From: Convolutriloba macropyga
Taxonomy: Eukaryota
DNA length: 64,000 nt
Reading direction: 5' to 3'
NCBI RefSeq assembly: GCF_964194025.1
Contig: NC_134472.1
Location: 59,892,001 to 59,956,000 of the forward strand
The notes beneath the pieces were generated by a model. The model made no database searches and was not told the origin of the DNA. It saw nothing but the letters and a program-made list of their open reading frames with translations. This document shows, piece by piece, positions 10,340 to 62,905 of the stretch (within the stretch, counting starts at the first letter, position 1; the number at the start of each line of letters is the position of its first letter). A program made the translations under genes and the position numbers.

Positions 10340-10386
10340 TCAGACTGATGAAGTAACATTCGACGGTCCATCTTCATTGTTGTCAT
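10340..10386 (-). CDS. Gene A exon 7 (terminal coding exon)
   Basis: Acceptor TATTTCAG|, reads (D)DNNEDGPSNVTSSV*. Phase 1 matches exon 6. Confidence 0.72.
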
Positions 10387-10742
10387 CTGAAATATGAGTT
10401 TAAGCCTCAATCAAGTTGAAATATAAAATAAACTACTGATTAAAAATTAATTCAGTCTCTTGTTTGAAAGTTAAGATGAGGAGAATATTGCTGTCGCGAC
10501 AAAAAAAATCTCATGTCTCCTCCTGCAGTTCATCAAATCTTTTTAAATGGAGAAAATGAACTATGAATTAGTTTTGGATAAAGTTTCTGAGAGGATTAGT
10601 TTTACGCTTCTCACAAATCCCGGATGTAAATTCATGGGCGACACGTAAGATGTGTTATAAAATCAATGATATCAGAATTATCTTCCTATCTGAAATTGAG
10701 GGAAATTGTTCGATTACAATAAAATGGGTTTGAACAACTAAC

Positions 10743-11218
10743 CTCTTGTGGTTTGCTGATTGTCTTCAATGTCATTTTCGTCTCTTCCGGTCCTTGTAGT
10801 AGACGAGTCAGGCGGCGTAAGTTCGACTCTGAGTTTGGACCGCTTGTTTTTGCATCGTGAAAATTCCATCATTTCCACTTCATCCTCTGCTGTTCTTTCG
10901 GCAGGTCGAACAGAAGTCATGGCATCGTAGTCAATGTCGCAGTACTGATGTGATGTCGTCCCAGAATCACTCCGATCCAAAACATGATACATCGGCTGAT
11001 CATCGTTAAACCCAGCAATGCTTACAGTCCCAGCTCTATGGGTTATTGGCCTTATTGTCCTCTTGTTCTCGCGGGTTGAATTGTGCGCTGCTCTCTCGTT
11101 GCCTAGGTTCTGGTTCTCAGCAGTGGGGTACGGGATGAAGAGAGGGTGTGGGTAGTGGACCAGTGCGTCAGGATTCGCAACCTGGTGGTCCTGTCTGCGG
11201 ATGTTACGCTTTTTCGAT
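10743..11218 (-). CDS. Gene A exon 6 (cytoplasmic tail)
   Basis: Acceptor CTTTTTAAG|, 476 nt open, GC-richer than flanks. Begins with basic stop-transfer SKKRNIRR and contains PMYHVL...QYCDIDYDAM. Donor G|GTTAGT. Phase 2 to 1. Confidence 0.85.
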
Positions 11219-14200: not shown

Positions 14201-14562
14201 TTCCAAATTTTATCCATCAAATTTTTATCTAAAAACCAAATTTTATTCAACTTTTTGATACAAAAAAATCTGAAATTGATTAAAAAGGACGCTAAAATTG
14301 AATAAAATCACGCCCATTGTGAACTTTTCACTAAAACTTTACACCTTGATAACTCTTCGAAAAAAAGAACTTCAAAGAATCTTTATAACTTCAAATTCTA
14401 TGCTGGAAGAGCTTTCTAGTGTTAGCACTCTCGATTCTTTACGATAATTATGTCGATCGGCCAAAATTGACTGAACAAAAAAAAACAATTTGAGTATATT
14501 GTTCCACCTCCACTATGTGTGTCTGAACAAATATACATCATACGTTTTAAAACTACACATAC

Positions 14563-14690
14563 TTGATGCATTTGAGAGCCGCGAATGTGATGCCAGCGAC
14601 GAAGAGAGCCAACAATAGGAGGAAAGTCGCAGTCATCGTGATAGCAGTCCAATTTTTGACAAACCAGTTGGCATTCGTTTCAGTTTGGCC
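14563..14690 (-). CDS. Gene A exon 5 (transmembrane exon)
   Basis: Acceptor CTTTTCAG|, reads GQTETNANWFVKNWTAITMTATFLLLLALFVAGITFAALKCI(K), donor AA|GTATGT. Phase 0 to 2. This frame is not the one listed in the ORF track. Confidence 0.88.
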
Positions 14691-15206: not shown

Positions 15207-15487
15207 CGATGCATTGTTTGAAGATCCTCCATTGTTGCTTGTCAATATGTTCCCTCGAGATTTATTGCCAAGCACTTGTCCATTCACAGGGACAGTAACA
15301 GGGGACTCAATCACCATCTCCGGTTTATAGGGTACCCTCTTAACTGAAACTAGTTCACACCTCCCCCTCCTTTTGATCTCAGGGGTGTCCAGCAGGTGAA
15401 GATATTGATAGCCCGGGTACTCTATTGGATTCTCTCCTTTCTCTGGTTTCAACGGAATCATCTGCAAACTGATGAACACCGTACCAC
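15207..15487 (-). CDS. Gene A exon 4 (conserved ectodomain segment plus stalk)
   Basis: Acceptor CATTTAG| (alternative in-frame acceptor 12 nt upstream, start 15499). Reads GTVFISLQMIPLKPEKGENPIEYPG...CELVSVKRVP...SSNNAS, donor |GTACTT. Homologous to the gene B exon at 62622-62905. Confidence 0.85.
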
Positions 15488-15554
15488 CTAAATGTGAATC
15501 TAAAATGTGGTTAAAAAAATTAGAACCAAACATATGAACGGTTTCTTACGTATC

Positions 15555-16721: not shown

Positions 16722-16927
16722 CTGGTGAAATAGAGTTTATTTTCTTTCCAAGAGGCATACACATCAACAGATCTCCCAAAGGGTTCGAGTCGCGAGTAAC
16801 AGGACCTGTGAGGGGGTTACTGAACATGAAAGTGGTTCTAGTTGTGTCCTGAACTCCTGACCTCGCGTCCTCTTTTCGAGCGTGAAACTCAAATCCATGC
16901 AGGTCGTCCATTTTTTCGCCCACTGGC
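16722..16927 (-). CDS. Gene A exon 3
   Basis: Acceptor TGTTTAG|, reads PVGEKMDDLHGFEFH...LLMCMPLGKKINSISP, donor G|GTAAGT. Phase 2 to 1. Confidence 0.85.
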
Positions 16928-17651: not shown

Positions 17652-17784
17652 GGTGAGGCAATTCCATGAACACAGAGCATGTCCCTCTTCCTGTCAAATG
17701 AGAGGGAGTTGTCGAGGAAGTGGACTCTTGGAGCAGATGCGTCATATTTACTCAGTTCGTCACGACATGCGTCCGATGCAAACT
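17652..17784 (-). CDS. Gene A exon 2
   Basis: Acceptor TGTTTCAG|, reads (K)FASDACRDELSKYDASAPRVHFLDNSLSFDRKRDMLCVHGIAS(P), donor CC|GTGAGT. Phase 1 to 2. Confidence 0.85.
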
Positions 17785-18427: not shown

Positions 18428-18563
18428 TCGCACAGCATTTTCGTTTGTAGAAACATTCCCCATCCGAGGTCTCAATCTCGTTCATGCATCTCAGGTCCAG
18501 ACCCTTGGCCAATCCAAAGAAAACTACCAGAAACGCAGATATGGAACTGATTCTGATTCTCAT
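18428..18563 (-). CDS. Gene A exon 1 (ATG, signal peptide, Cys-rich start)
   Basis: MRIRISSISAFLVVFFGLAKG|LDLRCMNEIETSDGECFYKRKCCA: basic N-terminus, hydrophobic core, A-K-G cleavage-like site. Donor A|GTAAGC (phase 1). Confidence 0.85.
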
Positions 18564-22385: not shown

Positions 22386-23432
22386 TCAGTAAAAGGAACT
22401 AATTGCAACGTATCTCTCCAGTATCTCTCCAGAGCTCTCCAAAGCTGGCCAGGAGTCTTTTCCTTTTAAGAGCTCAAGAAAAATTGAAAATCTGCAAGTC
22501 AAGAAACTCGAGTAACCATTTATATTTCCTTAATGTTAACCAGAAGTTAGAGCAGCAATAAAAATGATTTTGAGTCTAATGAAAAAACATGTAAGATAAT
22601 TTTTAAAAAAACTAATTTAATAAGCGTGTTTTTTACGCATTGCATTAAGTGCATATTTTAGTTTTTCAATCGAAAAGAGCTGCTCTGTCTATATGCGCTC
22701 TGAGAATTGATAACTTTTTTATATTTGATCGTTTCAAAATATGAAAGCTAAACTTTACTGCCTCTCCAGTGGAAAAACTTAAATTTTGCTTCGATAGAAA
22801 TTTTGAATCACTGCAAAATTTGAGATTTTGTCAAATTTATACTTTGTCAGTACGGCTATATACATTAGGTTAAATTCTACCGGGCTGACTGTTTTTGCGC
22901 GCCAAATTTGTGTTCAAGGTGGTTTTTAAAAGAACAAATTTTTGGGCGATAAACAATGGCAAAACATAACAAAAAGCGTAACTTTGAGGATCTATTGGAA
23001 CACTTTTCTTAATTTGTTTGCTTGTTGTCTCTAGGTTTAATTATTCCTACACTATTTTCAATTTGACACCGTGTCAGTGTCAGTTGGAGTTAATTTTTTT
23101 AAACCGAATTGGTGTTAGGCATGAACTTAAATGCTAAAATTTGACCGCGACTACAACTGGTTCACCAAAGGAGTCAATCTCAAGTGCAAAAGTTGGGTAA
23201 ACATTCATTTTAGGACCACAGCAATGTTTTGGTGGAATTTTTCTAAAAAATACTTCCGGGTCACACTCCGATTACTCCCTGTAAATACATTTGTTCAATA
23301 CTTGTTATCGTGATGTACAAATAGCAAACAGTCAAATTGGATTGCAGTCAATTTGAACTGCAAACAGCCAATTTAAAAGTTTCTCTCACTAATTTTTACG
23401 TTTTTACTCCCTTTTACCGACTAAAGAATGTT

Positions 23433-24331
23433 CCCCAGTCTAGACCAGATGGTTATCTTGCAAGATTCTGTCAGAATCTTGCAAAAAAACTGCCTATCTT
23501 GCGAGATCTGGCAGAAAAAGGGTTACCCTGCAAGACCTGGCAGAAAAACGGTTATCTTGCAAGATCTGCCAGAAAAATGGTTATCTTGTGGGAGTCTTGC
23601 AAGTTCGCTCGGGTCGAGTTGTCCTCTTATTGGCTCTCATTCAAGCAACGCATTTCATTTTGACCAGAAATTTAATTAAGAACAAGACGCGTGTTTATTA
23701 AGAAAAAAAATTATTTTAAATGGATTTTAAATCTGGAAAGCTGAAATATCTGAAAAAAAACGAATAAAAATCTGCCTTTGAGAACTGTTAACACAAAATA
23801 AATTACTATTAAAAGCTGTTTTCCTTCAACTTTATCAAGATTTACATAACTACACGTCTAGATTACCTTCTCTGATGAAAAATTATGTGATATTATTCTT
23901 TGTATCTTAAACAGCTTCCTTTAATATAATTCAGCTCCTTACGCTTAAGTTTTCTTTCCAATGCCAAACAAAATGTGATTATTCACGGCGTGCCATTTTT
24001 TAAGCTTCGAAGGACTTTAGAAAAGCTTTCGTGCAAATCTCTTGCTGTCAGAATTACTCGCATTAATCAATTCATCTTGTAGGATCTTGTGCAGAAAAGT
24101 GGACATATTAGAGGATTCTGACAGAGAAATCATTATCTTGTAAGATTCAATTGCTATCTTACAAGATTCTGGCAGAAAAATGGCCATCTTGCAAGATTCA
24201 GGCAGAAAAATGGTTTTCTTGCAAGTTTTTGGCAGAAAAATGGTTATCTTGCAAGTTTCTGGCTGAATGAATGGTTATCTTGCAAGAATCTAACAGAATC
24301 TTGCAAGATAACTATTCGAAATCGACGGGGG
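23433..24331 (+). mobile_element. MITE-like element with subterminal ~21-bp repeats (GGTTATCTTGCAAGATTCTGGCAGAAAAAT-like), copy 1
   Basis: Termini CCCCAGTC...GACGGGG, repeat arrays at both ends. The whole element is the reverse complement of 24445-25369. Confidence 0.8.
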
Positions 24332-24444
24332 TTTCTTAATTGAAAATTTTATTTCAGTTGTGATTATTCAATAAGTAAGTAAATGGTTACTTTATTTGAG
24401 ACGCAGGCTGTCAAATAATACCATTCGAAATACACCTGGCAGTA

Positions 24445-25369
24445 CCCCAGTCGATTTAGAATGCTTATCTTGCGAGATTCTGGCAGATTCCGCCAGAATG
24501 TTGTAAGATTATGCATAATATTGCAAGATTTCTGTCAGAATCTTGCAAGATATCCATTCTTTCTGCCAGAAACCTGCAAGATAACCATTTTTTGGTCTGA
24601 AACTTGCAGTATAACCTTTTTTTACTGCCAGATTCTTGCAAGATAGCAAATTTTCTGCCAGAATCTTACAAGATAATCATTTCTCTGTCAGAATCTTCTA
24701 ATATATCCATTTTTTTGCAAAAGATCCTACAAGCTGAAATGATTATTGCGAGTAATTCATTCTTACAGCAAGATAAATGCGCGAAAATACTTCTGAAGTC
24801 CCTGGAAGCTCAAAAAAATGGCAAGCCGTGAATAATCACATTTTTGGGCAATGGCAAGAGAACTTAAGCGTAAGGAACTGAATTAAATGAAAGGAAGCTG
24901 TTTAAGATGCGAAGAATAATATCAAATTTTTCCATCATGAAATAAAATCTAGACATGCAGTTCTTTAAATCTTGATAAATTCGAAAGAAAATAATTTTTA
25001 ATAGTAATTTATGTTGTGTTAGCAGTTCTCAAAGACATATTTTAAATTTTTTATTCAGATAATTCATATTTCCGGATTAAAAATCTACTCAAATTTTTTT
25101 TTCTTTCAAAACACGCAACTGATTCTTAAGAAAATTTCTGGCCAAAAATTGCGTTGCATGAATGAGAGCCAATTAGAGGACAGCTCGACCGGAACGAACT
25201 TGCAAGAGTATTGCAAGATGACCATTTTTCTGGCAGATCTTGCAACGTAACCATTTTTCTGCAAGGTCTTGCAAGATTTCCCTTTTTCTGCCAGATCTTG
25301 CAAGATAGGCAGTTTGTTTGCAAGATTCTGACAGAATCTTGCAAGATAACCATCTGGTCTAGACTGGAG
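24445..25369 (-). mobile_element. Same MITE family, copy 2, inverted
   Basis: TA|CCCCAGTC...GACTGGAG|TA; flanked by TA on both sides. Confidence 0.8.
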
Positions 25370-25390
25370 TAGACACCTGTCAATAGAGTA

Positions 25391-25877
25391 CCCCGGACCT
25401 TAGTGCCATAGTAATTCAGTGCTGAAACATTGGATTCGGTTTGTATATCGTCGGCCCAGTACTGTATCAGTGTATCCTAAGAGTATCTTACTACTCATGA
25501 TGTACAGGACAAGTCCCATAGATACTTTTTTTCTGCAAATAGTCTGTGCATCCTTTTGATTCCCATAATATTCATAGCAAAATCATGATAAATTGTGAAA
25601 ATTTTGAAAAAGTTTGAAATTTTGGGCGATGCCCTTTTTGAGCATGATAAAGAATTACAATCTTAAAATGTTGCAAGAAACGTATTAAGATTAGCAAAAA
25701 GCCCGCCAAAACCAGTAAACACACGCCAAAAACCAGAAAAAAACACGCCGAGTGCCTGAAAACTGACAAATTCTCAAAGTTTTAGCTCCGACAAAAACAG
25801 ATACAGTTCTGGGCCGACGATATACAAATGGAGTACAATGTTTCGAGACTGATATGCTATGGGACAAAGGTCCGAAA
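25391..25877. mobile_element. MITE with ~75-bp terminal inverted repeats
   Basis: 25394-25468 (CGGACCTTAG...TTTGTATATCGTCGGCCCAGTACTGTATC) is the reverse complement of 25800-25874. Confidence 0.75.
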
Positions 25878-31833: not shown

Positions 31834-31837
31834 TTTC

Positions 31838-41290: not shown

Positions 41291-41322
41291 TTAAGCAGTG
41301 GAAGACAGACCATCCGGTGCCT
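41291..41322 (-). CDS. Candidate terminal exon of gene B
   Basis: Strong acceptor TTGTTTGTTTCAG|, phase 1, reads (E)APDGLSSTA*, resembling the short last exon of gene A (EDGPSNVTSSV*). An alternative candidate lies at 44875-44742. Confidence 0.35.
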
Positions 41323-44720: not shown

Positions 44721-45310
44721 AAAAAATTTTCTCAGCTTGTTTTACATATTTTTCCGATATTTTTCTCGACCCGGTTTCTTTGAATTTAGAGCTTTTTTGG
44801 ATGAATAAATAGGAAGAGTTTTGAGAGACAACTCTGATGCTCTATGAAAAAGATCATAGTACTGTACACTTACGACTGAAACAGAGAGCAGAATATATGA
44901 CAGATTTGACCAAAAAGAAACGAAAAAATGCAAAGGCATTCCTTCGAAAAACGTTGGTTTGAGATCATGATCAACACAAAATTTCAGATCGGAGTTACTG
45001 ATAGCGACGAAGCAGTAGACGAGAAAATTTTGTTTACTGTCTAGATATATCAACAACGATTAAGAAATTGTTTCTCAAAAACGATGCGCTTGCAACTTGC
45101 ACTTGCAACTTAGAAGATTGTAATTTAAAAAAATCTCATTTATCTAAAAATTGAAGTTCACTAAGATATGAAAACTTTGCATAATACGCCTTCACATCTT
45201 AGTCTGTGAAAATTTTAAAAAATGATGTTTATGATGTGGTGAAAAATTTTTTCTCGTGTGTGTGATTGGATAAGATTTACATTCTAGTTCCTTACTTGTT
45301 ACCCACGTAC

Positions 45311-45765
45311 CTATTCTCACAGCAACGCTTTCTGTTTGTTCACGTTCTGTGCGTTCTAATTCTGTGTCTGTAGATTCAGGATCCTCCTCCTTCGATTGAA
45401 TTTCACTATCTTCGACTACCGATTCTGTCGAGTGTTTATGATCAGTCTCTACTGTATCTCTAAGTCCTTCGTTGTCTACAATTTGAACGCTTTGTTCGCA
45501 TTGTGAGGACGAAATCGCTACTTCATTGGAATCTGAACCAGGAAAAGTAGCCGGATAGTCCGGCCGGAGAGACCCAAGAGAACTGTTATCATAAGTGTAC
45601 ACCTGAAGGCTCAATCCATCAATGTTTTCGAATTCAGCATTCTGGCCTTCGTTGTTTTCAGCTTGATTGCCACTTGCTGGTTGATGTGAAGTAGGTTGAT
45701 GATTGATTGTTTGAAGTTGATACTCCGTTTCTGGCTGTGAGTCAGCCTTCTTGCCCCTTGTGACT
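45311..45765 (-). CDS. Gene B cytoplasmic exon (acidic, S/T/E/Q-rich)
   Basis: Acceptor AATTTCAG|, 455 nt open, reads VTRGKKADSQPETEYQLQ...VYTYDNSS...ESVAVRI, donor G|GTACGT. Phase 2 to 1 and length similar to gene A exon 6; basic residues follow the TM. Confidence 0.75.
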
Positions 45766-46717
45766 CTGAAATTGGCGCCATCTTAATCACGAGCTATCGC
45801 AATAACCAGTTTCAGAACATCTTTTGCGATGCACGCGTTCTGAAGAATCATTTATTCAAAGGACTCTCACAATTTGTGCAAAATTCTTCTCAAAACTCAG
45901 CAAAATTTCGTTAACAAAAACTTCAGATCTTAAGACCACATGCAACCATAAACTGTTTTATTGCCAGGAAATGTGAAAATGTTATAGGCATTATGATGCA
46001 TGAATTCTCAAAGAATTCCAAAACGTCAGATCAAGTTCTGAGATATCATAATAAACGAATCATTTACGAGAATCTTGGCATTCATAGCAAGATCATGTCA
46101 GAAAATTTGCATGGCCTGCATGGAACCATTTATGTTTCTTGCATATGGTTACCAAGACAACTCAACCTGGCTTCAGTCTTTTTAATTTGTATTTTTTAGA
46201 GGAATTTCAACATTAGTTACCGTTATCTGCGGAGCTTGTGATATCAAACTGCTAGTGAACAGCTTATCATCATGATAGACGCCAGAGCTCGGAAATTTTT
46301 GGAAACTATGAAAGTTAAAGAGTGAAATAAATTTGTTTTCTTACAGCTCAAACTTCACCATACTAACCACTAGATTGTGATATTGCCCCATCCAACATGC
46401 GTTCATGGGATCGATCAAATTCGGCCCTGATCAGGCTTTGCCTCATCCACATTTGCGCGTTTATGACTCGTTAAAGATTTTTGGCTGCGTTATTGCCTCG
46501 ACAAAATAGGTTGGTTTTTGATTTAACCAATAAATCTGGCGCGTTTTTTGGCTCCTTCAAGATTACCTAAGATAAGACTTGAGCATGAAAAACTTTTGGG
46601 AAGCTTTTTGAAACACCCGTCGCGATGAATGCGGTGAAATTTCATAAGAGTTGTGGTTTTTATAATTGAATGCAATGAAAAGTATCACCGCTAAACTCGC
46701 CGCAAATCCTCAGACAA

Positions 46718-49292
46718 TGTAGAATTTAGTATTTATGTTGTTAGAAGGCTTCTAGCTGGGGACTGACTAGCTTCCAAAACCCTATCAAAAATCTGAAAGA
46801 TTTTTTTGGTAGTTCCTCTTGTTGTAGGGAGTCTACTGTGTTGTCCCCAAAAAATGTTGCTTTCTCGGCTGCTTGAAAACTTCACTCTGGATAATTGAAC
46901 TAATAATCAAAATAGGTAATACCGTCAATACATAATGTTATAGCCAGAGACAGTTAATTGAGTAAATTCAACAATCGAAAGGAATTTTTCTATCAAAACT
47001 AATTAATGGTCCACACTAAATCAAACCAATTCAGTCACCCTCTCGGCAAGTATCCAAAAATCTCTACTTCCTATCCGAAACTAAAAATAAGTTCTTCTTC
47101 CCAGTAGCTATGTTACTGGCCAGAAATTTATAATCTTCGCAGCCAACAATATTGAACAACTTTGTAGTTTCACTCACTGCAACTGCGAGACTATGTTCCT
47201 TCGAAAAGAATTCACTAAACAACTACAATTTTCTCACTGTGAGAACCAACTGCTCCACTTGAGCTTTCTATCTCTCTCAATTTTCACTGGCGAACCGCTG
47301 TTCTTCAACTTCGTAAGTTTCTCTGTCTCTCTCTCTCTCAGACTCACTCTCTCGCGTCTGATGGTTTTTCTTGTGCTTACGGGTACTGAACCTTGTCAGT
47401 TTTTTATCAGCAAAACGTTGCATGTCGTTCCTTTTAGAACATTTTGACATAACGTATAAGTGCAAAAGTGGGCATAGAAGTGCAGTCACAAGATGCAATT
47501 TATCTAATAAAAAGAATTTGCCCAATTTGACCAGAATTTCGTGAACAACTTGCTTAGATAAGTTGGGGTTCCACAAAATGTGTGCTTCATGTTCAACACT
47601 TCTACAAGTGCATGCATTCTGTGTATAATATTCGTCAGCGTTAATACCAAAAAACTGAACTATAACTAATTAAGGTTCTTCGTGTTTAAATGTGGTTTCT
47701 GGCGGACTTTTTGACGCTGGTAAGAGTGTTGTTTCTTCCATGAAAGTACATAAAAAAATTAGTTATTGCCTCAGTTTTTGATTGTTTTAAAAGCAAAATA
47801 AACAGCTTTGGCGTAGAGGAAAATGCTCGCTCTTTTTCTCAATGCATATGCAGTTCTCCAAAAATTCACCAGTTAAAATTTGAGGTTGATCGGACTTGAG
47901 GAAGTAAGATTTTCAGGATTTTCGGGGGGTCGCAAAATTTTGGACTCTTATATTTTGAGCAAATTAGTCTATAGCTATCAGAATTCCCTTCAAACAATCT
48001 TTATTTTTTTGTGCTTGCTTCAACTATTTCTTAGCATGAGATCTAACAATTAATTTCTCCATTTTATGTACCTCTATTATCACACTTTATTCATAACTCA
48101 TGATTTCTACTAAAAATTCCGGTTAAACACTTTTTGAAGTGCCAATACGTTAATTACTGACAATTTTTCTTGACAATTTTGATTACTTCTACTGTACAGT
48201 TACCACACTATATTAATGTTCCTTCTCCAGCTCCGGTTTTAAGTAGAAAATTTGGTTTTCTCAAAGTTTCCCTGATTACTTCGACCTGACGAACAAAATT
48301 TGAATATAAGAACTCCAACGATAGTGAAATATTACTCTCACTAGTTCTTCTCATAAGGGATTACCGGACTTGGATCCAATAAACCTATTGCAATACAAAA
48401 ATTAAACAATTTTTCAATTCATTCCTTTTCTTTTCATTTCGTCATGCATGTCCGTCCAACCACCTTTCTGATCCATTTAATTGCGTTTTGATACCAAATC
48501 CGTCTTGTTATTCCACAATGAAACGAAAAACCTGCCAAACTGCACTATAAAATATTCATTTTAGGTTATCAAGATTCTTTTTTCCTGCCATTCGCAATTT
48601 AAAAACAATTGGTAAATTTAATTTTTACCATACAGTACGCTTTAATTTTTCATACAATAAAGTTAGTGACCAAAATTTTCTTCTTTTTATTGTTCTTTAC
48701 TTTCCATACTAGGTATTACCATTAGGCGCAAACAAACATTCTTTTTTGGAAAAATGCAATAAATTCGGCCGACAAATCCTTCAAAGCAAATCTTTTGTTT
48801 GTTTCACTTTTTATGCACTAATTTTTCCTAGTTAACATACCCATTATATTTTTCCTGTAAACACTAAACAGTAACTCCGAACTTGTAGCTACTTATAGGA
48901 AATAAATACTCACTTTTTCTTTACCAAAATGGCTTTTAGATAGTGCAATTTTGGGGTTTGGGGAAATCATAAATTTATACCATTGCTTTTCCTAAGCACT
49001 TCCATTTTTTTCTGCTATAATCATACTTTGTTACTTTCCTTCAATAACCTCTGAGATTCGTTCTGACTATTTCTGACAACTTGATCACTCTGCAAAGCTA
49101 GTCTCTCTCTTTTGTTTACTTACCGAACAATTAATCAATTCGCTCCAACTTACGTCCCTGAAGTTAGTTCCATTTGTTTAAACAGCCAAAATGCTCAAGA
49201 TTAGATTCTGAACTCTTCAAACTAATTAACCACCCAATATCGAAGCTTCAATGTTATGTAAGTTCAATGATTTGAAGTATAAATTCCCCGCT
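46718..49292 (-). repeat. 3' LTR (~2.6 kb) of gag-only element
   Basis: Colinear diverged direct repeat of 55754-58384. PPT-like tract at 49293-49302 (-). Confidence 0.82.
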
Positions 49293-52202
49293 AATCCCTC
49301 CTAAATTATTATTTCCCCGAATAAAAAAGTTGATCTAAATGTTCTAGCATACTCTCTCGCACAGAATTGTGTTTGTACTTAATGAACCTACGTAAGTATG
49401 AACCATTGAAATAGAGCTCCAGTAATTGCTGGTTAGATAATGCCCACCGTTTAGTGATTAAACAGTTACTACAATATATTAGCAGGATAATACAATTAGG
49501 ACACTCAGTCAACCAATTGTTTTGAGCAAAACACTGGCTGAAGAAAAGCTCACAATCAAACGAATCCTATAACATCAATCTAACTTTGTCTAGTATTAAC
49601 CTAACTCCGAACTTTGCAAATAAACTGGTCATCTTTTCAATAGTTTTTGTCATTTAGAGCATATGCACTTCATTATTAACAGCAGATTTATTGATTTACC
49701 AGTGAGCTTCTAATTTAATGTATGGCATAATCATAAGCTTCGTCAGCTTAGACATAGTAGCTCTCACCAAAGACAGTTCAACTTTACCACTTTTGTCAAC
49801 TCTTTTTTATTCCTCCTGCGCTTGAAGGGATGTCCGCCTCCAGTCTCATTCTTTGACCTTTTCATTTGTTTGCGCCAAACTCCCCTCGACGGCTTCCACC
49901 AGAATTTCAATTTGTTCCACTTCTCTTTCCGTCATGGTACTCCAGTCTTCCAGACTTCTCTGATCGTCACTCGCCTTCAACAGGCTTGGATGAGACAAAC
50001 ACTACGCCTCCCTCCTATATTGTACTATCTCTTCTTGGCCGGATAAGCTTATCGACAAGTGATTCCGATCAGTGCCTATTGCTTTCTTCAAAAGTTCATA
50101 ACAAAGGACTGATTGCGTTCAGCATCCTGCTTTGAAAAAGAACTCTCGAATTGTACTGCCACTAAAATCTCTTCAAATTCATATGCAAAACCGTTTTCTC
50201 CGTTATTCGGCATTTTCAGCTCCAGATCACTTGCCTTTGAAGGCATCAACGACTTATCGTCACCAAATTTTTTCTCGTGAACGTGCAAGCCTTCACAATC
50301 TTATTCCTTAGTTCAAATTTTTTGGGAAAAGTCTTCGCCTGTAGTGGAAATTTGATTTGCCCCACGATCAGTGGCTGCTCAATCGCGCTGTTTGCCATTT
50401 TTTCACTGTGACAATTTCCATTCCTTTCAGCCTAGGAGCAGCTCACTTTCGTCACTAGTGTTTTCGCAGTTGTCTGGTCAAACCTGACAAATAATTGATT
50501 CAACAGCCAAAGATATTTCTGCAACGAAGCTTTGATTCTCCACCATTTTGGAAGTTGCAGGAGTTAGCTGACGAGAAGTTCCAAATACAGTTTCATCTTC
50601 CTATATAGTATCGCCAACACCTCTAACAATTGCGACAATGTTTGAGTCCCCTTTTTCATTTTTCTCTGTTTCATCAACTGCGTTTTCTTTCCAATTCTAA
50701 AAAAAATTTTCAAAAATTGACAAAAAAAAATTCATCTGATTTTGCCGTTGTAATCGATTTTTCCTCTTTGCACTCTGTTTCAACCTCATTAATGTCTATT
50801 CTTGAAGCCATGTTTTCACAACTGTTAATTGCCTCCCCAATTGCAGTTAGGAAAAGTACAAAACTCTCGTGTAAGATGTCACTGTTATCTCCAGAAGAAC
50901 TCGGCTCAAATTAAGATGATCAGTGTGCTGCGACCGAGTACTGATTATACCTTGGCTTGAACTATCAGCATTTAAAGTTCCACTGAAAATATTTTCTGCT
51001 CTTGTGGCTAAATCACATCTCTGAGCAAAATTGAAAAGCAGCATAGGCGTTTATCCAACATCTATCTATTTGCTATAATACGGCATGCATGGACCGGAAG
51101 CGATGTATTCATATGTTATCAACCCATTAAAGCGATGTTTCCCAACTTTCATTTTGTTTTTGGTAGTAGGTTCGAAAGAATCAGAGTTAATGTGCCGCTC
51201 ACGAATGTTTGAAAGGAAAACATCGTCGTCCATGCATTCGAACTTGTTTTCATTGTCGCTATCGAAGAAGCTGTCATCATCGCTGAAATTGTTGTTACTA
51301 AAAATTGCTATATCCTCCAACTCACTGTTACCAATTTCCTCAAGTGCTTCGCTTCTCAGTTCTCCAATTGTCATATATTCTTACCAATTTCCAACAGTGC
51401 AATGCATCGATCCATAATTTCTTCGAACTGTTGTTCTTCAGATTTGGGCTTTGCGTAATCTGCTTTTCCATTTCTCCGTCATAATCAAAACTTCGACTGC
51501 CATCAATAACGTCAACAGTCTCCGCACCAGACAAACTGTCATTCCTTATTTGAATTGCTTCTTTGCCTCCCATCTCTGAACTTCGGCTTCTCTTCAAGCG
51601 CTGCTTTTACCCCAAAACCACCAGCTTCTATTGCAGAACAACGTTTAGTCAAAGAAACATCGTCGAAAGTCGTTCTATTGTCTTTTCTAATTTTCTGGTC
51701 TCTTCTTTGCTCGCTAACTCTTTTCTGCCAACAACGTCACTTTGGAACACTGATCCGTCAGATTGACTCTGTAAAACCGCTTCCTCAATTTCCTCCATCT
51801 CTATCAAGTACCTCTCAAATGCGCATCCTCATACATCTTTGGACAGTTAGACAGTCTCAAGTCAAAGAAGTACGAAGGTTACTGAAGAGTCCAAGCACGA
51901 TATTTTTGATCGGGTTTCCAATATTTATGTGGCAAGTAATTTAAAGCACCAAGAGCCCAATCACACAACTTCACTGGTAAATATCTCTTGACTTCTTCTT
52001 CCGTCTACATGAACATTTCACAAACATCCAAGTAATACTCACGCCAGTTCTCCCAAACTTCCTACCCAGGCAAAAGAAATTGTTTTTAATAATCCAAATT
52101 CTGCCATCGTTCTCAAAAATGCTTCACTCTACTCTGAATGCTCTTCTGTGGCTTCAATTTCTGCTGCAAATCTTCTCAGCTCTTATTTTTTCTCTGTCTG
52201 AG

Positions 52203-53593
52203 TGTGATATCTCCAATTGTAGAGACACTCTCTTGCGCCGCAATTCCACCTCAAGTTTTCATACTGGATTCGAGGTGTGAATCCAAGCTTTGGTTAATTC
52301 GTGTGATTACCTCTTTTAGATTTACTTAGCAATCGTGGCGCGATTGCACATGAAATTATTGAGTACGGAATTCCTTGTCCAATCCACTTAGATTGAGATG
52401 AAATTTTTGACTACGAAATTACTTGTCCGATCCACTTAGAAGATTGAGAACAACTGAATTCGATAATAAGATTCAAGAGAATGAATAAATAGTCAAAAGT
52501 GGGGGATGTGAACAACCTAAAATATTGACTTTTGAGTCGGCGGTAAATTACTTGTAGGTGAACTATGACTTATAGCCTGACAAGGGCAAACATAAAATAA
52601 TTTAGTACAAATTAATAAAGATGGACTTAATATGGTACCACCGTACCACATATCCTTGGCTCGAGCAAAATTTTAAACTGTAACAGTGTAAAATTTATGA
52701 TAATAATAACATATGTACTGGTTATTATAAATAATAAGAGATGTGAGCAACAACAGATAAGTGACGAAAGAACAGTGGAAAGGAGGTTCAAATGCAGGAG
52801 AAAACTAAATCAATGCAAATTTTCAACATTTACGGTAAAATATATGCATGCAATATAAATTAAGGCACAATCGCGATGCAAATCCCGCAAAATTAATAAC
52901 GTAGAAGATATGGTTACATGAGCATTGATCTCGTTCACTTTGAGTAGTGCTATTTTCGGCATCATCCTCGTAACTAGGTTCTGGGGGTAGAAAGACCTTG
53001 TCCGGAGGATTTTCAAGGAGAATGTCAATTGAAATGCCTTCTTTAGCCATGATAGCCAATTTTAGCATGATCTGCCATCTATCCCATCGTAGTGGAGGAT
53101 CAAGTGTTGACTTTTCCCAAAAGGGCTCGATCCCAAGAAGTGCACGTTCTTTGGTTGCTGACTGCGCCATGTGATATCCCCAACTGTAGAGACACTCTCT
53201 TGCGCCGCAATTCCACCTCAAGTTTGTATACTGGATTCGAGGTGTGAATCCAAGCTTTGGTTAATTCGTGTGATTACCTCTTTTAGATTTACTTAGCAAT
53301 CGTGGCGCGATTGCACATGAAATTATTGAGTACGGAATTCCTTGTCGAATCCACTTAGATTTTTTACGGTAGGAAAACAGAGAAGATTGAGAACAACTGA
53401 ATTCGATAATAAGATTCAAGAGAATGAATAAATAGTCAAAAGTGCGGGATGTGAACAATCTGAAATATTGACTTTTGAGTCGGCGGTAATTTACTTGTAG
53501 GTGAACTATGACTTATAGCCTGACAAGGGCAAACATAAATTAATTTAGTACAAATGAATAAACATGGACTTAATATGGTACAACCGTACCACA
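52203..53593 (-). mobile_element. TRIM-like miniature LTR element (Gypsy-derived), nested
   Basis: LTRs 53593-53170 and 52650-52203 (TGTGGTAC..ATCACA), PBS TGGCGCAGTCAGC, 519-bp interior with gag 5' end. Perfect TSD CTGAG (52198-52202, 53594-53598); empty site at ~55445. Confidence 0.93.
52823..53170 (-). pseudogene. gag: Truncated gag mini-ORF of the TRIM-like element
   Basis: MAQSATKERALLGIEPFWEKSTLDPPLRWDRWQIMLKLAIMAKEGISIDILL...SERD: ~80 uninterrupted gag-like codons, then unrelated sequence. Confidence 0.75.
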
Positions 53594-53900: not shown

Positions 53901-54989
53901 CTGTAGAATTGTTTACTGTTAGATGGCTTCTAGCTGAGGAGTGACCAGCGACCAAAACCCTATCAAGCTTCTGAAAGATTTATTTGGTAGTTCCTCTTGA
54001 TGTAGCGAGTGTACTGTGTTGTCCCCAAAAAAATGTTGCTCTCTTGGCTGCTTGCAAACTTCACTCATGATAATTGAATTTATAATCAAAATAAGTAATA
54101 CCCGTATTAAGTAATGTTACAGTCAGAGACAGTTAATTGATTAAATTCAACAATCGAAAGGAATTTTCCTTTCAAAACTAATTAATGGTCCACACTAAAT
54201 CAAACCAATTCAATCAGCAATCAAAGTCGCACTGAAGATATTTTCTGCTGTTGCGGCTAAATCACATCTCTGAGCAAAATTGAAAAGCGGCATAGGTGTT
54301 TCTTCAACATCTATCTGTTTGCAAAAATACGGCATGCATGGACCGGACGCGATGTATTCGTATGTTATCAACCCATTAAAGCAATGTTTCCCAACTTTCA
54401 TTTTGTTTTTGGTAGTAGGTTCGAAAGAATCAGAGTTAATGTGCCGCTCACGAATGTTTGAAAGGAAAACATCGTCGTCCATGCATTCGAACTTGTTTTC
54501 ATTGTCGCTATCGAAGAAGCTGTCATCATCGCTGAAATTGTTGTTACTAAAAATTGCTATATCCTCCAACTCACTGTTACCAATTTCCTCAAGTGCTTCG
54601 CTTCTCAGTTCTCCAATTGTCATATATTCTTACCAATTTCCAACAGTGCAATGCATCGATCCATAATTTCTTCGAACTGTTGTTCTTCAGATTTGGGCTT
54701 TGCGTAATCTGCTTTTCCATTTCTCCGTCATAATCAAAACTTCGACTGCCATCAATAACGTCAACAGTCTCCGCACCAGACAAACTGTCATTCCTTATTT
54801 GAATTGCTTCTTTGCCTCCCATCTCTGAACTTCGGCTTCTCTTCAAGCGCTGCTTTTACCCCAAAACCAACAGCTTCTTTTGCAGAACAACGTTTAGTCA
54901 ACGAAACATTGTCGAAAGTCGTTCTATTGTTTTTTTCTAATTTTCTGGTCTCTTCTTTGCTCGCTAACTCTTTTCTGCAAACAACGTCA

Positions 54990-55360
54990 CTTTAAAACAC
55001 TGGTCCGTCAGGTTGACGCTGTAAAACCGCTTCCTCAATTTCCTCCTTCTCTATCAAGTATCTCTCAAAGGCATCCTCAAACAACTTTGGATAGTTAGAC
55101 AGTCTCAAGTCAAAGAAGTACGAAGCTTCTTGAAGAGTGCAAGCACGATACTTTTGATCGCGTTTCCAACTTTCATGTGGCAAGTAATTTAAAGCACCAA
55201 GAGCCGAACCACACAACTTCACTGGTAAATATCTCTTGACTTCTTCTTCAGTCTACATGAACATTTCACAAACATCCAAGTAATACTCACGTCAGTCCTC
55301 CCAAACTTCCTACCCAGTCAAAAGAAATTGTTTTTAATAATCCAAATTCTGCCATTCTTC
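54990..55360 (-). pseudogene. Gag capsid-like remnant (second copy at ~51740-52110)
   Basis: Across frameshifts reads ISFD..GS.WED*REYYLDVCEMFM*TEEEVKRYLPVKLCGSALGALNYLP, fitting the F.G...W...F......W.EEE....L...L.G.A retrotransposon gag pattern, just downstream of the PBS. Confidence 0.6.
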
Positions 55361-55753
55361 TCCAATATGCTTCACTCTACTCTGAATGCTCTTCTGTGGC
55401 TTCAATTTCTGCTGCAAATCTCTCAGCTCTTATTTTTTCTCCGTCTGAGCAATCTCCACAATCTATCTGGTTCAGCTAGAATTCTCGTCCCGAAAAAAAA
55501 GACTGACTGTCTTCGAAAAAAACCCTTTCCCGGTAATATCTGTCTCTGTTGGTCAAATTCTCTCATTATCCTTCGTTTCACAACACTTGTAATCTTGTTC
55601 TGACTATCGATAACGTGTTCATCGAATTGCTCTGCGTCAAAAGTTGTCGGCTTTAAACACTTGTTTCAAGTCTCCCAGAACTCTCTTCACACTCGTATAA
55701 GAATTTTCTGATTAACTCCCTTTTTAGCAAAACAGCCCATCCAGGAGCGCCAC

Positions 55754-58384
55754 TGTAGAATTGTTTACTGTTGAGACTGCTTCTAGCTGAGGACTGACCA
55801 GCGACCAAAACCCTACCAAAATTCTGAAAGATGTATTTGGCAGTTCCTCTTGATGTAGGGAGTGTACTGTGTTGTCCCCAAAAATTGTTGCTCTCTCGGC
55901 TGCTTGCACACTTCACTCTTGATAATTGAATTTATAATTAAAATCAGTAAAACCCGTAACAAGTAATGTCATAGTCAGAGACAGTTAATTGATAAAATTC
56001 AACAATCGAAAGGAATTTTCCTATCAAAACTAATTAATGGTCCACACTAAAATAAACCAATTCAATCACTCTCTCCGCAAGTATCCACAAATCCGTCACT
56101 CTACGTCCTACTCCAAACAAAAAAAAGTTCTGCTTCCTTGTTAATGGCCAGAAACTTATAATCTTTGTAAGCAACAATTTTGAATAACTTTGCAGTTTCA
56201 CTCACTGCAACTGCGAAACTTTGTTCACTCACTAAACAACTACAATTTCTCACTCTGAGAACCAACTGCTCCATTTGAGTTTTCTATCTCTCAATTTTTA
56301 CTGACAAACCGCTTGTCTTCCATTTCGTAAGTCTATCTCTCAGACTAAATCTCTCGCGTCTGATGGTTTTTCTTGTGCTAAGGGTTTTTCTAAGGGTAAT
56401 CAACCTTATCAGTTTTTATCAGCAGCACTTTAAGTGTCCTTCCTTTTAAAACATTTTGACCTAACGTATAAGGGCGGAAGTGGGCCTAGAAGTGCAGTCA
56501 CAAGATGCAATTTATCTAATGTAACTATTTGCTCAATTTGACCGGAATTTCGTGGACAACTTGCTTAGATAAGTTCGGCTCCCACAAAATTTGTGTTTCA
56601 TGTTCAACACTTGTGCTCATGCATTCTGTTTTTGTCCTTTCCCTGTTACTGATATTTCCCTTCCCTGATTTAGCCTTTGAATACTTTTTCTCTCCTTTTG
56701 GTGCAAAATTTTTTGAAAATTGAGAATTTTCTGCCTTTTTCTTTGCAGAATATTCGTCAGCTTTAATACCATAAAACTGAACTATAACTAATTAAGGTTC
56801 TTCGTGTTTGAATGTGGTTTCTGGTGGATTTTTTGTATCTGGTAAGGGTGTTGCTTCTTCCATGAAAGAACATTAAAAAAAATTAGTTATCGCCTCCTTT
56901 TTTGTTTGTTTTAAAAGCAAAATAAACAGCTTTGGCATAGAAGAAAATGCTCGCTCTTTTTCTCAATGCATATGCAGTTCTCCAAAAAATCACCAGTTAA
57001 AATTTGAGGTTGATCGGACTTGAGGAAGTAAACTTTTCAGGACTTGTGGGGGGTACGCAAATTTATGGACGCTTACATTTTCAGCAAATTACTCTATAGC
57101 TATCAAAATTCCCTTCAAACAACCTTTATTTTATTCTGCTTGCTTCAGCTGTGTCTTAGCATGAGATCTAACACATAATTTATCCATTCTATAAACTTCT
57201 ATTATCAAACTTTATTCATAACTCATCATTTCTACTAAAAAATCCGGTTTAATATTTTTTGAAGTTCCAATACTTTAATTATTGCTTTTTCTTGACATTT
57301 TTGGTTACTTCTACTGTTTTGTTTGCAAACTATATTAATGTTGCTTTTGCTTAGCTCCGGTTTCAAGTGGACACTCTGGTATTCCCAATCTTTTCCTATA
57401 GACCTGACTGACTTTCCGATAAATTAGACCTGACTGACAAATTTTGAATCTAAAAACCCCAACAGTTTGAGTTAATTCCCAACATCCATACCAAACTTCT
57501 CCTGCAAATACAAAAACACTACTGAAATAATACTCTCATTAGTTCTCCTCATAAGGGATTACCGGGATTGGATCCAAAAAAACCTATTGCAATACTAAAA
57601 GTAAACAATTTTTCAGTTCATTTTTTTCTTTTTGCATTTTGATACGAAACCCGTCTGGATATTCTACTATGAAACGAAAAACCTGCGAAATAACAATTGG
57701 TAAATTTAATTTTTACAATACAGTACGCTTTACTTTTTCATACAATAAAGTTAGTGACAAAAACGTTTTTCTGTTTTTCTCTGTTTTCTACTTTCCTTGC
57801 TAGGTATAATCATTATGGGCAAGCGAACATCCTTTTGCTTGGCAAAATGCAATAAATTTGACCGACAAATCCTTCAAAGCATATCTTTTGTTTGTTTCCT
57901 TTTTTATGCACTAATTTTTTCAATTAACATACCAATTATATCCCTCCTGAAAACACTAAACAGTAACCCCAAACTTGTAGCTACTTATAGGAAATAAATA
58001 CTCACTTTTATTATACCAAAATGGCTTTTAGATGGTGCAGTTTTAGGGTTTGGGGGAATTCATAATTATATATCATTGCTTTTCCCAAGCACTTCCATTC
58101 CTTTTTTCTGCTGTAATCATACTTTGTTCCTTTCGTTTAATGACCTCTGAGTTTCATTCTGACTACTTCTGACAACTTGATCACTTTGCAAAGCTAGTCT
58201 CTCGTTTGTTTACTTAACAAAAAATTAATCAATTGGTTCCATCTTACATCGCTCAAGTTCGTTCCTTTTATTTACATGGTCAATATGCTCAAGATTAGCT
58301 CCTAAATTCTGCAAACTAATTAGCCATCCAAAATTGAAGCTTCAGTGTTATGTAAGTTCAACGATTTGAACTATAAATTCCGCA
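55754..58384 (-). repeat. 5' LTR (~2.6 kb) of gag-only element
   Basis: Colinear diverged direct repeat of 46718-49292, abutting the PBS at 55733-55752. Confidence 0.82.
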
Positions 58385-58679
58385 GAAAACTTACACTTCT
58401 CGAGAATCTTATAACTACTTAAAAGAATCTGGAAAAATGTGTTCTTTATTAAACGTCTAGACACCGCATACAGTCTTGGATCAAAATTCTTCATGAAAAG
58501 ATTGAGTTCGAATGAAATGGTCTATGAAAAGAGTTTGTGTTAACTCAGGTGAGCCTCGATCGTGTTTAGAAAACATTATAAAATATTTTCCGACACTACA
58601 TCAGCTATTTTATCAGTTGTTTTGCTTGACACGTAAAAAAAACCGTGGTCGACTTTAGTAGGCTATGAAAAAGTTGTCT

Positions 58680-59582: not shown

Positions 59583-59698
59583 CTGGATTTTATAAAGAGA
59601 ATTATTATCACGAGACATATGGTGACAACAGCAGTCAAGAAAACGGAAGTAAGCAGTTCAAAAGTCGTCCACATGTTCCCTGTGTCCAAATCATCCGG
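59583..59698 (-). CDS. Gene B transmembrane exon
   Basis: Acceptor ATTTTTTAG|, reads PDDLDTGNMWTTFELLTSVFLTAVVTICLVIIILFIKS(R), donor AG|GTTAGA. Phase 0 to 2 as in gene A exon 5. Confidence 0.82.
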
Positions 59699-62621
59699 CT
59701 AAAAAATATGATCATTCCGACTTGGCACTTTTCTCCATTTTTTGAAAAAATTAATATGACAAGCTTTTAACTTTTATGCAGCGGAAAAGTTCCACACACG
59801 GAAAAGTTCCCAGTTTTGGCAAGTTTTAATTTGTCTTTCTTAAGCAATTTTGATCACAATAGAACAAAAAAAACTTTCAATGTATAAAAAAAGTCCTTCA
59901 CCAGTACAAACACTTCTGTCTCGTTCTAAAAGTCATTCTTAATTGCTTTCTCACTCTGCAGATCTAAAACATTGTACGTTGTACGGGTAAATTTACTCAA
60001 AGTCTATCTGACTGCGTACAAGAACCATCTTAAACTTTAAATCCTAGTCTCAGCAAACTTGAGTCAAAATGGCCATCATTTCTCAAATTTCCCAAAAGAA
60101 AAACAATTTGAATGTCCATGCAAAATTTTGCAAATTATGCCTTTTTTGACGTCATAAATTGTAAACATTTGTTAGTTGAACATTAGTTGAGGGTATCAAG
60201 GTTATGCGACGGTAGGGCCCAGGAATCTTATGTGCGTGCAAAATATTTCAATCAAAATTATACTGATTAGGTATGGTATAATATCAAGATATAATTGAGG
60301 CGATCAGAAGCACTTGTTTTCTTGTAAGTCACTGATTTCTTTTTGTCTTGAAACTGGTCGACTATTCGCGGATTATTATTGAAACTGTGTGAACTTGTAG
60401 CCAAAACAAACGGATGTATTTTGCTGTTTGACTTCTGACATTCGAATAAAAATAGGCTAAAAGAGGGCAAAGACAGAGGTCTTGATAACTCTACAGAACA
60501 AGGACATACCCGTTTCAGATTCATCCATATCATCTGACCAGACGGAATACCACATTGCTGTCGTGCAACTGTCCTATGACTATCATGAGACAACAAATAT
60601 GTACGAGCAAAACTATAGTGACTAAGTGTTCTCCTATACGAATCAAGTGGCAAAACGATGCGAATCAGAACCCAAAAATAACCTAGAATACCTTTTTTTA
60701 GTTTTTAGAAACGTAAGTAAAAGTAACCGCAAAAATTTGAACGCAAGAAGAAAAAGCACACTACGGTGGCATTGGTTAAAATTGACATGAGTTACATGGT
60801 AAAGTTTTTGTGAATTAGGTGGTACAATTTTGACATGAATTACGATGGTAGGTTAATTTAAAGTAAACAAACAGTGTTTGGAGGGCCGAAAAATTTAATT
60901 GTCGAAGAATGAACAACAGAATTAAATTTGTAAAAAAAAAATCGAATGCTGTACAGATATACCCCATAGGTAATGCCATAATGCCATAATGGTAAAAAGC
61001 GTTTCTAGAGTAATAAATAGCGTGGATAATGAGATGTCGAAATGGAAATACGTACTTAGTTACAGTCATCACTATCTAATATAGCGCATAATTGTTTGTA
61101 TTACTAATGTGAGGAAATAAACTAAGCATTAGCTCTTACTGCTCGAGCTATATCGCTAAGCATTTAGCCGCCGCGCTCAGCTGAGCTTGTTGTTGTTGGT
61201 GGCTATTCCTCTGTTGCTGGGCTTGAATCGCCAGCCAGTGGATTGAATCCTCGCAGAGTTGGAAAAAGTGCTTCTAGTACAAATTCACTGCTTTTGATGG
61301 TGATGGTTTATACTTTTTGCCAGCTGGCATAGTATGGTTGGTTGATTCACTATGTCAACATAGTAGAGTTTTGTATTGTATGTAGCACTGCTACAACGTG
61401 ACAAACGATCCAACAAATTGCAGACCACGCCTGCTCCCTCCAAACGTTTTTTGAAAGTTTTTCGAAGACAATATACATGCAGGACAACTAATAAAAAAAT
61501 CAACTCATACAAAATCTGCGAAAAAGAAGGTTTCGTTTATTTCACTGAATGCAGTCCAAATTAATAACAACAACTTCACTACAGTTGTAATGATTGCTTG
61601 TTTTAACCACATTTGACCTTGAAAAGTATGATGCACTACTAAATAAAGAGAAAAGTCGCGGATTTTATTATTTTTTCTTCAAAATGTCGTCGTCTTCTTA
61701 TGTGGTAAGTCTTGCGAAACAAATTTTAATGAAGATGCATCAAAACTCAATCAACGCGCCAACACATTCCAAAGTAACAATGCTAAAAATGTCTTTGTTT
61801 CAAGTAAATGATCTGAATTTTAAAGTATGCAAAATAATTTATTGCTTTGAGTATGGTTATCCTATCAAGACATTGTAGACTTGATAATTGTACAATAAGT
61901 TTTGAAGTCTTAATAGAAAATATAGTGAACATTTTTTAATACCATTTGGATTGAAAGCGGAAAGAGACTCATTTCAATTTACGCAAAATTGTCAATCACA
62001 TTTTCCCAAATACACTGACGGAAAGAGCAATGCGAATTACGCAGAGTTAATATTGACAACGAATTCCACTTATTAGTCAGAAGTCAAACAAGTAAACAGT
62101 TTTTCCATTATATTGTCCGCGATAGCAAATGCTGATACAATTAGAGAGGGACTGTCTGGCAAAAAACCAATTACTGTATTGAATAAATCTCCAGCGATCA
62201 GTAGTTTACAATATCCAGCCGAACTCATTATCCGACTTAATCGTGACCTTAACTAACGACCATCATAATTCAAAATTCATATCATCCGCCGATATTAAAC
62301 TATATATTTGTTTCCTTCTATACTTCATATACAAGCTTCCTTTAAATTCATTTCGACAACTAATAATTTAATCATAAAATAGCCTTCGATAGGTGGAATA
62401 AAATCCGGCTGTATAATTTTGGTCCGTAAAAATATCAAAGAAGGGGAAATTTTTTCAAAGAGATGTTAGCGAAATCAAATACAATGACAAAAGCTTTATG
62501 CGGAAAAGTCTCCGAAATTTCTGCAAATTGCCAAAAATCGTTTTGTCTGGTAAAATGCAATCACTGGTATTTCAATGTCTCCTTTTTCATTTTCATGGTA
62601 TAAAGTCGAAAAACCTCTCAC

Positions 62622-62905
62622 TTTAAATGAGGAAGTGGGCTGCTCTGCCTGTGGAAACACCTCATCCACACTGTTCCCAACATCATCAATATCAACAGGT
62701 TCGATGTACTGCTCAACCACATCATCATAATTCTGAGTTTCTTCACAAGTGTGCGGCTTTCTTTTGATGGAAACTAATTTGCAGCCACTTTTCTCGATCT
62801 CAATTGTGTCTAGATCGCACAGCATAGGTGATCCGGGGTACCTCACTGCGGGGAAACCATCGTGTGGTCTAAGTGGGATCAACTCAAGAACTGATATGAA
62901 CGCCT
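62622..62905 (-). CDS. Gene B exon homologous to gene A exon 4 (upstream exons presumably outside the window)
   Basis: Acceptor ATGTTTCAG|, reads AFISVLELIPLRPHDGFPAVRYPGSPMLCDLDTIEIEKSGCKLVSIKRKP...TSSFK, donor |GTGAGA. 284 nt, phase 1 to 0 as in gene A. About 25/52 identities with gene A. Confidence 0.88.

Follow-up and report, generated by a model that had tools for sequence, protein, structure and literature searches.

A clustered family of predicted type I surface proteins, so far restricted to acoels, with an IL-17R-D1-like ectodomain model and divergent tails

The Alr loci of Hydractinia encode immunoglobulin (Ig)-like, hypervariable ectodomains under diversifying selection, and vertebrate paired receptors of the KIR/LILR/SIRP type join near-identical ectodomains either to a tail with immunoreceptor tyrosine-based inhibitory or switch motifs (ITIM/ITSM) or to a short tail and a charged transmembrane residue. 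IL-17 receptors are defined by a double-FN3 ectodomain and a SEFIR domain, both of which are often degenerate beyond detection by sequence (PMC11087794), and their D1 domains form receptor-receptor tip contacts (PMC9477748). In acoels, which host algal symbionts that they acquire and retain, the immune signalling routes common to other animals are reported to be missing (PMC12849515; bioRxiv 10.64898/2026.03.06.710013). Here we analyse a stretch of 64,000 nucleotides (nt) from the acoel Convolutriloba macropyga (59,892,001-59,956,000 of chromosome record OZ077303.1, hereafter the window). This AT-rich animal DNA (36% G+C, no N runs) contains the whole of one gene, gene A (LOC142340139), and part of a second, gene B (LOC142339507), and we ask how the family to which they belong compares with these systems.

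With moderate confidence, we favour the reading that genes A and B belong to a family of type I surface proteins so far confined to acoels, in which a conserved IL-17R-D1-like module would bind a conserved partner and a variable, motif-based tail would provide the intracellular coupling. Each protein is predicted to have a signal peptide, followed by a single compact, disulfide-bonded beta-sandwich ectodomain of ~195 amino acids (aa), in which a Cys-rich N-terminal extension of ~40 aa would pack on an FN3-type core. The models place this ectodomain closest, among known structures, to D1, the domain with which IL-17 receptors bind their ligands. A disordered stalk of 40-60 aa, glycosylated or acidic, would then lead to a transmembrane helix with a conserved Trp ahead of it, and a low-complexity cytoplasmic tail would complete the protein. 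The ectodomain, we infer, has a conserved binding partner that is probably a protein, and short linear motifs in the tail (Tyr motifs and the PDZ-type C-termini TSSV and ESLV) would pass on a signal or serve in anchoring. Because the motifs differ among paralogues and splice isoforms, one recognition module could be coupled to different intracellular outputs.

Comparison of the two genes in the window confirmed that A and B are real, diverged copies of one gene family. When all stop-to-stop open reading frames (ORFs) of the window were compared all against all, the sole similarity between the two gene regions was that of their motif exons (27/55 aa identical, E 2e-13, BLASTP), and the remaining matches were DNA-level repeats. 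An earlier note on this DNA had counted about 25/52 identities between two peptides, both of which we place on the minus strand (15330-15479 in gene A, 62754-62903 in gene B), and had described a pair of genes on one strand with common exon phases (1-0, 0-2, 2-1) and similar exon sizes. The AG/GT splice sites and the phases were reproduced for three gene A exons (15487-15207, 281 nt; 14690-14563, 128 nt; 11218-10743, 476 nt) and two gene B exons (62905-62622, 284 nt; 59698-59583, 116 nt). The third shared exon of gene B needs correction from 455 nt to the 470 nt of the RefSeq model (45765-45296, donor GTAAGG, phase 2->1), which is closer to the 476 nt of gene A. The three-exon comparison had also missed two upstream ectodomain exons to which the homology extends, and the shared ectodomain is therefore a unit of ~195 aa encoded by exons 1-4. 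Ten Cys columns are conserved in it, except that two of them, possibly one disulfide, are missing from gene A and from no other member. A and B are 49% identical when the motif block is compared, and 33% identical when exon 3 is taken together with the motif exon. The cytoplasmic tails of family members are, as the note had said of A and B, not alignable with each other (best E 0.2), and exon order and phases are kept throughout the family.

Gene A is annotated in RefSeq as an "uncharacterized protein" with isoforms of 468 and 472 aa. It lies wholly inside the window in seven coding exons, whose joined translation equals the RefSeq protein P0002 exactly:

18428..18563, minus strand: exon 1, with the ATG at 18563, the signal peptide and the first four ectodomain Cys; donor GTAAGC, ends in phase 1
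17652..17784, minus strand: exon 2, 133 nt, ectodomain with the conserved motifs D.CR.EL and NSL.FDR...LC
16722..16927, minus strand: exon 3, 206 nt, central beta strands of the ectodomain
15207..15487, minus strand: exon 4 (motif exon), 281 nt, phase 1->0, last ectodomain strands and start of the stalk
14563..14690, minus strand: exon 5, 128 nt, phase 0->2, end of the N-glycosylated stalk, juxtamembrane Trp and transmembrane helix
10743..11218, minus strand: exon 6, 476 nt, phase 2->1, low-complexity cytoplasmic tail with YHVL-x11-YCDI and YDAM
10340..10386, minus strand: exon 7, last 15 codons, C-terminus TSSV, stop ending at 10340

Isoform X1 uses an alternative exon 4 acceptor at 15499, 12 nt upstream. 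A model with exon 1 joined directly to the motif exon is in frame, and was ruled out by RefSeq and by the homologues, which have the two extra exons. Within intron 5, the segment 14340-14539 belongs to a repeat or satellite of extreme abundance: its summed contig depth is ~50,000 to 570,000 in four genomic runs, vs ~2-100 around it, and many loose ends fall at 14449-14486.

Gene B, also an "uncharacterized protein" in RefSeq (379 aa, P0001), spans from 41291 to about 73418 in window coordinates, with its first exons beyond the window end. Those inside the window match P0001 in translation:

62622..62905, minus strand: motif exon, 284 nt, phase 1->0; further upstream exons lie outside the window
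59583..59698, minus strand: transmembrane exon, 116 nt, phase 0->2
45296..45765, minus strand: tail exon, 470 nt (RefSeq), phase 2->1, after a repeat-filled intron of 13.8 kb
41291..41322, minus strand: last coding exon, C-terminus ...GLSSTA, stop ending at 41291

The RefSeq model of gene B begins at an internal Met of the exon 2 equivalent, and both the reading frame and a phase-1 acceptor extend upstream of this Met. A search of the sequenced DNA 5' of exon 2 revealed no exon for a signal peptide. A 200-N assembly gap between genes B and D (gene D is described below) is located ~290 bp upstream of this exon (L003 9409-9608, about window 73811-74010). Because relatives carry exon 1 at a matching distance, with first introns of 450-640 bp, the gap sits where exon 1 of gene B is expected. 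It probably hides the signal-peptide exon and accounts for the truncated RefSeq model; the missing signal peptide is most simply an artefact of assembly and annotation. The 13.8-kb intron of gene B holds large direct repeats (46700-49300 vs 55800-58400, and 51000-52300 vs 54200-55600) whose translations are up to 100% identical.

A profile of the two motif exons, searched against 1.84 billion representative proteins, gave 12 matches, 11 of them acoel or acoel-like and one a spurious bacterial repeat protein. The members comprise three C. macropyga RefSeq genes, among them A and B themselves, Symsagittifera roscoffensis LOC134856112 and LOC134844667, ORF fragments of the ENA assembly ERZ25071359 and one Tara Oceans transcript. 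ERZ25071359 is derived from the reference-genome specimen, as contigs in it agree with gene D at 99.985% and with gene C at 100%. Further protein searches with the gene A ectodomain or the family alignment added almost nothing new, and a query with the gene B ectodomain found gene D. The family ectodomain had no match in Pfam (E up to 10) or among PDB sequences. The annotated C. macropyga members, C, A, B and D, lie within ~190 kb of OZ077303.1:

59.807-59.828 Mb, minus strand: gene C (LOC142340137), ~74 kb beyond the window start and on the same strand as A and B
59.902-59.911 Mb, minus strand: gene A, RefSeq model
59.933-59.965 Mb, minus strand: gene B, RefSeq model
59.975-59.995 Mb, plus strand: gene D (LOC142340140), 480 aa, a complete member

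Gene D is arranged head-to-head with gene B, with ~9.5 kb from the ATG of D to exon 2 of B. A fifth locus, E, was found on a contig at 105x coverage that carries exons 1-4; its protein is 89% identical to that of D, and the introns are no longer alignable. A maximum-likelihood tree grouped the genes as (A,C), (B,(D,E)) and the two Symsagittifera members (Sros1,Sros2). Because members thus group by species, the family appears to have expanded by local duplication separately in each species. We found no mention of the LOC or XP identifiers of these genes in the literature, and the searches suggest that the family is undescribed and, in current databases, so far restricted to acoels of the Convolutriloba/Symsagittifera group. 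The earlier note's proposal that the pair is part of an undescribed, clustered family of single-pass, receptor-like proteins is borne out: the family is lineage-restricted and has more than two copies, with four annotated genes in ~190 kb plus locus E. An intron of LOC134844667 (L005 18898-29677) contains nine tandem units of ~1.34 kb, each with a copy (70-73% identical) of the 30-aa segment just before the transmembrane exon region (residues 256-285 of P0019); this exon-bearing tandem repeat is possibly a source of alternative exons.

Three tests agree that the ectodomain is under purifying selection, with ratios of non-synonymous to synonymous substitution rates (dN/dS) of 0.04-0.21, and that the tails are under relaxed constraint. 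For D vs E, exons 1, 3 and 4 together gave a dN/dS of 0.21, with the motif exon by itself at 0.16. Between D and contig L004, which aligns to D along 16.5 kb, it was 0.17 over the ectodomain and transmembrane region, and the motif exon had 11 synonymous and 2 non-synonymous differences (0.04). Since the two D versions have coverages of 33x and 21x vs 49x and 60x for the two haplotypes of gene C, L004 is most simply the other haplotype of gene D. Between the gene D haplotypes the tail is 86% identical in protein vs ~98% for the motif exon. Variants of gene A in four genomic runs comprised 8 synonymous and 5 non-synonymous changes. The polymorphism data cover one specimen, which supplies nearly all of them, and two samples, and the dN/dS comparisons leave out A vs B as too diverged (33-49% aa identity).

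Divergence is unevenly spread along both genes D and A. The two D versions (L004 and L008; L008 9978-26145) differ by 1-3% substitutions over the 5' half and by 7-11% from the motif exon onward, mostly in introns, with coding sequence staying conserved; the gene C haplotypes differ by 1.6%. For the more divergent 3' half of gene D, possible sources are an old haplotype, conversion by a copy outside the sample, and a duplication of very recent date. In gene A, heterozygous sites are unevenly scattered: 13 variants and an indel lie in 650 bp around exons 6-7 (10445-11088) and 5 variants in the motif exon (15350-15453), and in the four genomic runs there were none in 3.1 kb of intron between 11300 and 14400. 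From 11300 up to 15146, the only variants are at a repeat near 14411-14452. In an animal that propagates asexually, such a pattern may arise through tracts of conversion or of lost heterozygosity.

The fold of the ectodomain was modelled with AlphaFold for two members at 40% identity, A and C. Predicted TM-scores (pTM) were 0.72 and 0.75, with per-residue confidence (pLDDT) mostly 80-95 over the globular part. The two models agree in the order of elements, a Cys-rich N-terminal piece of ~40 aa with a short helix and small strands and then a beta sandwich, and each has one folded domain followed by a disordered stalk of 40-60 aa (pLDDT below 50). A second structure aligner, independent of Foldseek, was run against all PDB clusters and on the list of Foldseek matches, and ranked IL-17 receptors above the generic sandwiches each time:

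Model A, all PDB clusters: IL-17RB Z 8.2; second chain of the IL-25-IL-17RB-IL-17RA complex (probably IL-17RA) Z 6.6; generic sandwiches <=6.4
Model C, all PDB clusters: IL-17RB Z 7.5; second chain of the ternary complex Z 6.7; IL-17RC Z 6.5; generic sandwiches <=6.1
Model C, Foldseek list rescored: six IL-17R entries, with RB at Z 8.0, 8.0, 7.4 and 6.3, RA at Z 7.3 and RC at Z 6.0; generic <=5.9

The IL-17R alignments start at model residues 10-22 and include the N-terminal extension, whereas generic matches start near residue 44. Because a Z of ~8 is borderline by the calibration of the aligner, we keep the claim to a reproducible IL-17R-D1-like fold, borderline in strength and short of proven homology. 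No second FN3 domain (D2) was found in the models, which have the single ~195-aa folded domain, and a sequence profile search of Pfam gave no match to SEFIR or TIR in any member at E up to 10. Lacking both the second FN3 domain and SEFIR, these proteins are not IL-17 receptors by definition. No Ig match was found in Pfam either, the modelled fold being FN3/IL-17R-D1-like instead. Language-model features of the ectodomain pointed to cytokine receptors with a score of ~0.8, which is in the chance range and was used only as a lead.

Hydropathy and the order of elements predict that the family consists of type I single-pass membrane glycoproteins with the N-terminus outside. By hydrophobicity, A, C, D and both Symsagittifera members have a hydrophobic N-terminus, and one transmembrane window (Kyte-Doolittle value above 2.3) is followed by basic residues. 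The stalk of 40-60 aa is glycosylated or acidic, with the conserved Trp before the helix, and the tails are 140-225 aa long, acidic, Ser/Thr-rich and of low complexity. A regex scan of eight protein models including isoforms, from six genes, found no ITIM/ITSM and no charged residue in the transmembrane core, and the YHVL-x11-YCDI pair, which resembles an immunoreceptor tyrosine-based activation motif (ITAM), occurs in gene A only. C-termini are TSSV in A, ESLV in Symsagittifera P0019, SSTA in B and TRMS in C, with the PDZ-type ends of A and P0019 absent from B, C and D. Gene C is annotated with three isoforms, whose tails measure 141, 62 and 15 aa. The earlier note's tails with Tyr motifs hold for gene A (YHVL-x11-YCDI and YDAM), and the tails do differ; the Tyr-rich acidic stretch after the motif in B and D, however, precedes the transmembrane helix and should for that reason be extracellular stalk, not signalling tail. 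Feature matches of the gene A tail to proteins of the SCIMP, LIME1 and PAG type scored <=0.74, again in the chance range and a lead only. In the last exon of gene D (L008 29382-29930), the last ~55 residues of the RefSeq protein form an odd hydrophobic string; because this string is interrupted by an in-frame stop in the other haplotype, the annotated 3' end may run into non-coding sequence.

The DNA between genes A and B contains a BEL/Pao-type long terminal repeat (LTR) retrotransposon (window 29300-40500, plus strand), whose ORFs at 32600-38550 encode gag-like (DUF1759), reverse transcriptase, Pao and integrase parts interrupted by stops and frameshifts. Its putative LTRs are near-identical direct repeats of ~1.2 kb at about 29.37-30.61 kb and 39.30-40.31 kb, with approximate boundaries. 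A second direct repeat lies nearby (28.29-28.95 vs 30.87-31.55 kb), and an inverted-repeat, foldback-like structure is located at 23300-25500.

Several observations weigh against the favoured reading of a conserved IL-17R-D1-like binding module joined to interchangeable tails. Foldseek searches of PDB, AFDB clusters, Swiss-Prot models and the ESM Atlas returned generic beta sandwiches only (TM-score <=0.39, none significant), the alignments behind the AlphaFold models are shallow (9-12 rows), and the borderline Z of ~8 falls in a range common for models without a clear match. The exon joins rest on RefSeq models, splice consensus and conservation across species, and in the four genomic DNA runs on gene A depth stays level across introns and splice joints are absent; a search for RNA runs with the tail exon listed none. 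The motifs in the tails are short, are not kept between paralogues and could be chance. Sampling outside the two acoel genera is thin, and sparse coverage of other xenacoelomorph proteomes may account for part of the acoel restriction.

Outright descent from IL-17 receptors, with D1 kept, D2 and SEFIR lost, and a present role as decoy or co-receptor for cystine-knot ligands of the IL-17/Trunk type, would explain why all three IL-17R paralogues with solved structures rank at the top for two independently modelled members, through D1 and its N-terminal extension. Mouse IL-17RB is also the best TM-score among Swiss-Prot models, an IL-17RD-like cluster appears in AFDB, and the degeneration already described for these receptors (PMC11087794) would fit. 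We nevertheless think this descent unlikely, as the scores are modest (Z 6-8, TM-score <=0.38), IL-17R Pfam models and PDB chains give no sequence signal even at E 10, and the proteins combine one domain and no D2 with an undetected SEFIR and tails that resemble disordered adaptor-type tails. We found no report of IL-17 signalling in acoels in the literature. Adhesion or structural surface proteins without signalling, which might make homophilic cell-cell contacts or be anchored through PDZ scaffolds, are quite improbable in our estimate. The single small stalked ectodomain, tails without a catalytic or death-fold domain, the PDZ-type ends TSSV and ESLV and the tip contacts of IL-17R D1 domains (PMC9477748) are all consistent with such a role, but B, C and D do not share the PDZ-type ends, and the present data do not set adhesion apart from a receptor role.

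A further proposal, made in the earlier note, is that of a fast-diverging allorecognition locus or a cluster of paired activating and inhibitory immune receptors. The genes are clustered, lineage-specific and single-pass, with differing tails that carry Tyr motifs, including the ITAM-like YxxL-x11-YxxI of gene A; one gene D haplotype is 7-11% divergent over its 3' half; and acoels without canonical immune signalling would have room for novel receptors (PMC12849515). Against this, an ectodomain held at dN/dS 0.04-0.21 while tails drift is the reverse of Alr-type loci, and coding variants of gene A are mostly synonymous. The A and B ectodomains are merely 33-49% identical, no member has an ITIM/ITSM or a charged transmembrane residue, and the ITAM-like pair is confined to A. 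With only 4-5 loci and a domain that is not Ig-like in the models and is conserved between genera, we regard this proposal as largely refuted already by the selection tests and its remaining probability as very slight. What stands of the earlier interpretation is a pair of diverged paralogues in an undescribed clustered family with a shared ectodomain and different tails, without the paired-receptor and allorecognition flavour.

On present evidence, the family is one of many lineage-specific orphan receptor families; any link to symbiosis or immunity comes from the biology of the host, and the recognition-locus signatures that were tested were absent. As a selectively maintained, acoel-restricted set of surface receptors it is also a concrete candidate for how acoels sense partners and pathogens, and RNA-seq contrasts suited to testing this candidate exist (BioProject PRJNA1332086, with aposymbiotic juveniles, symbiotic adults and Vibrio-challenged adults). 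In place of the canonical immune signalling that acoels have lost, an IL-17-receptor-like ancestor might have given rise to clade-specific, single-domain, SEFIR-less receptors that joined a conserved ligand module to interchangeable, motif-based tails for sensing microbes or algal symbionts in the photosymbiotic lineage, an idea that we hold to be improbable.

Set beside the described systems, the family shares with Alr genes and KIR/LILR/SIRP receptors a clustered, lineage-specific, single-pass organization in which the tails of neighbours differ. Unlike them, it appears not to be Ig-like, has few copies and no dichotomy of ITIM and charged transmembrane residue, and its ectodomain is under purifying selection and 33-58% identical between neighbours. 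With SCIMP, LIME1 and PAG it has in common long, acidic, Ser/Thr-rich tails with scattered YxxL/I/V/M motifs; those adaptors are nearly without an ectodomain, whereas the acoel proteins have a conserved one of 195 aa, and there is no sequence homology. From IL-17RA/RB/RC the acoel family differs in having neither D2, SEFIR nor detectable sequence similarity, and in a cytoplasmic part that is of low complexity and not conserved. The likeness to these receptors lies in the predicted type I, single-pass architecture and in a modelled membrane-distal FN3-type sandwich whose N-terminal extension carries a short helix and disulfides (Z 6.0-8.2).

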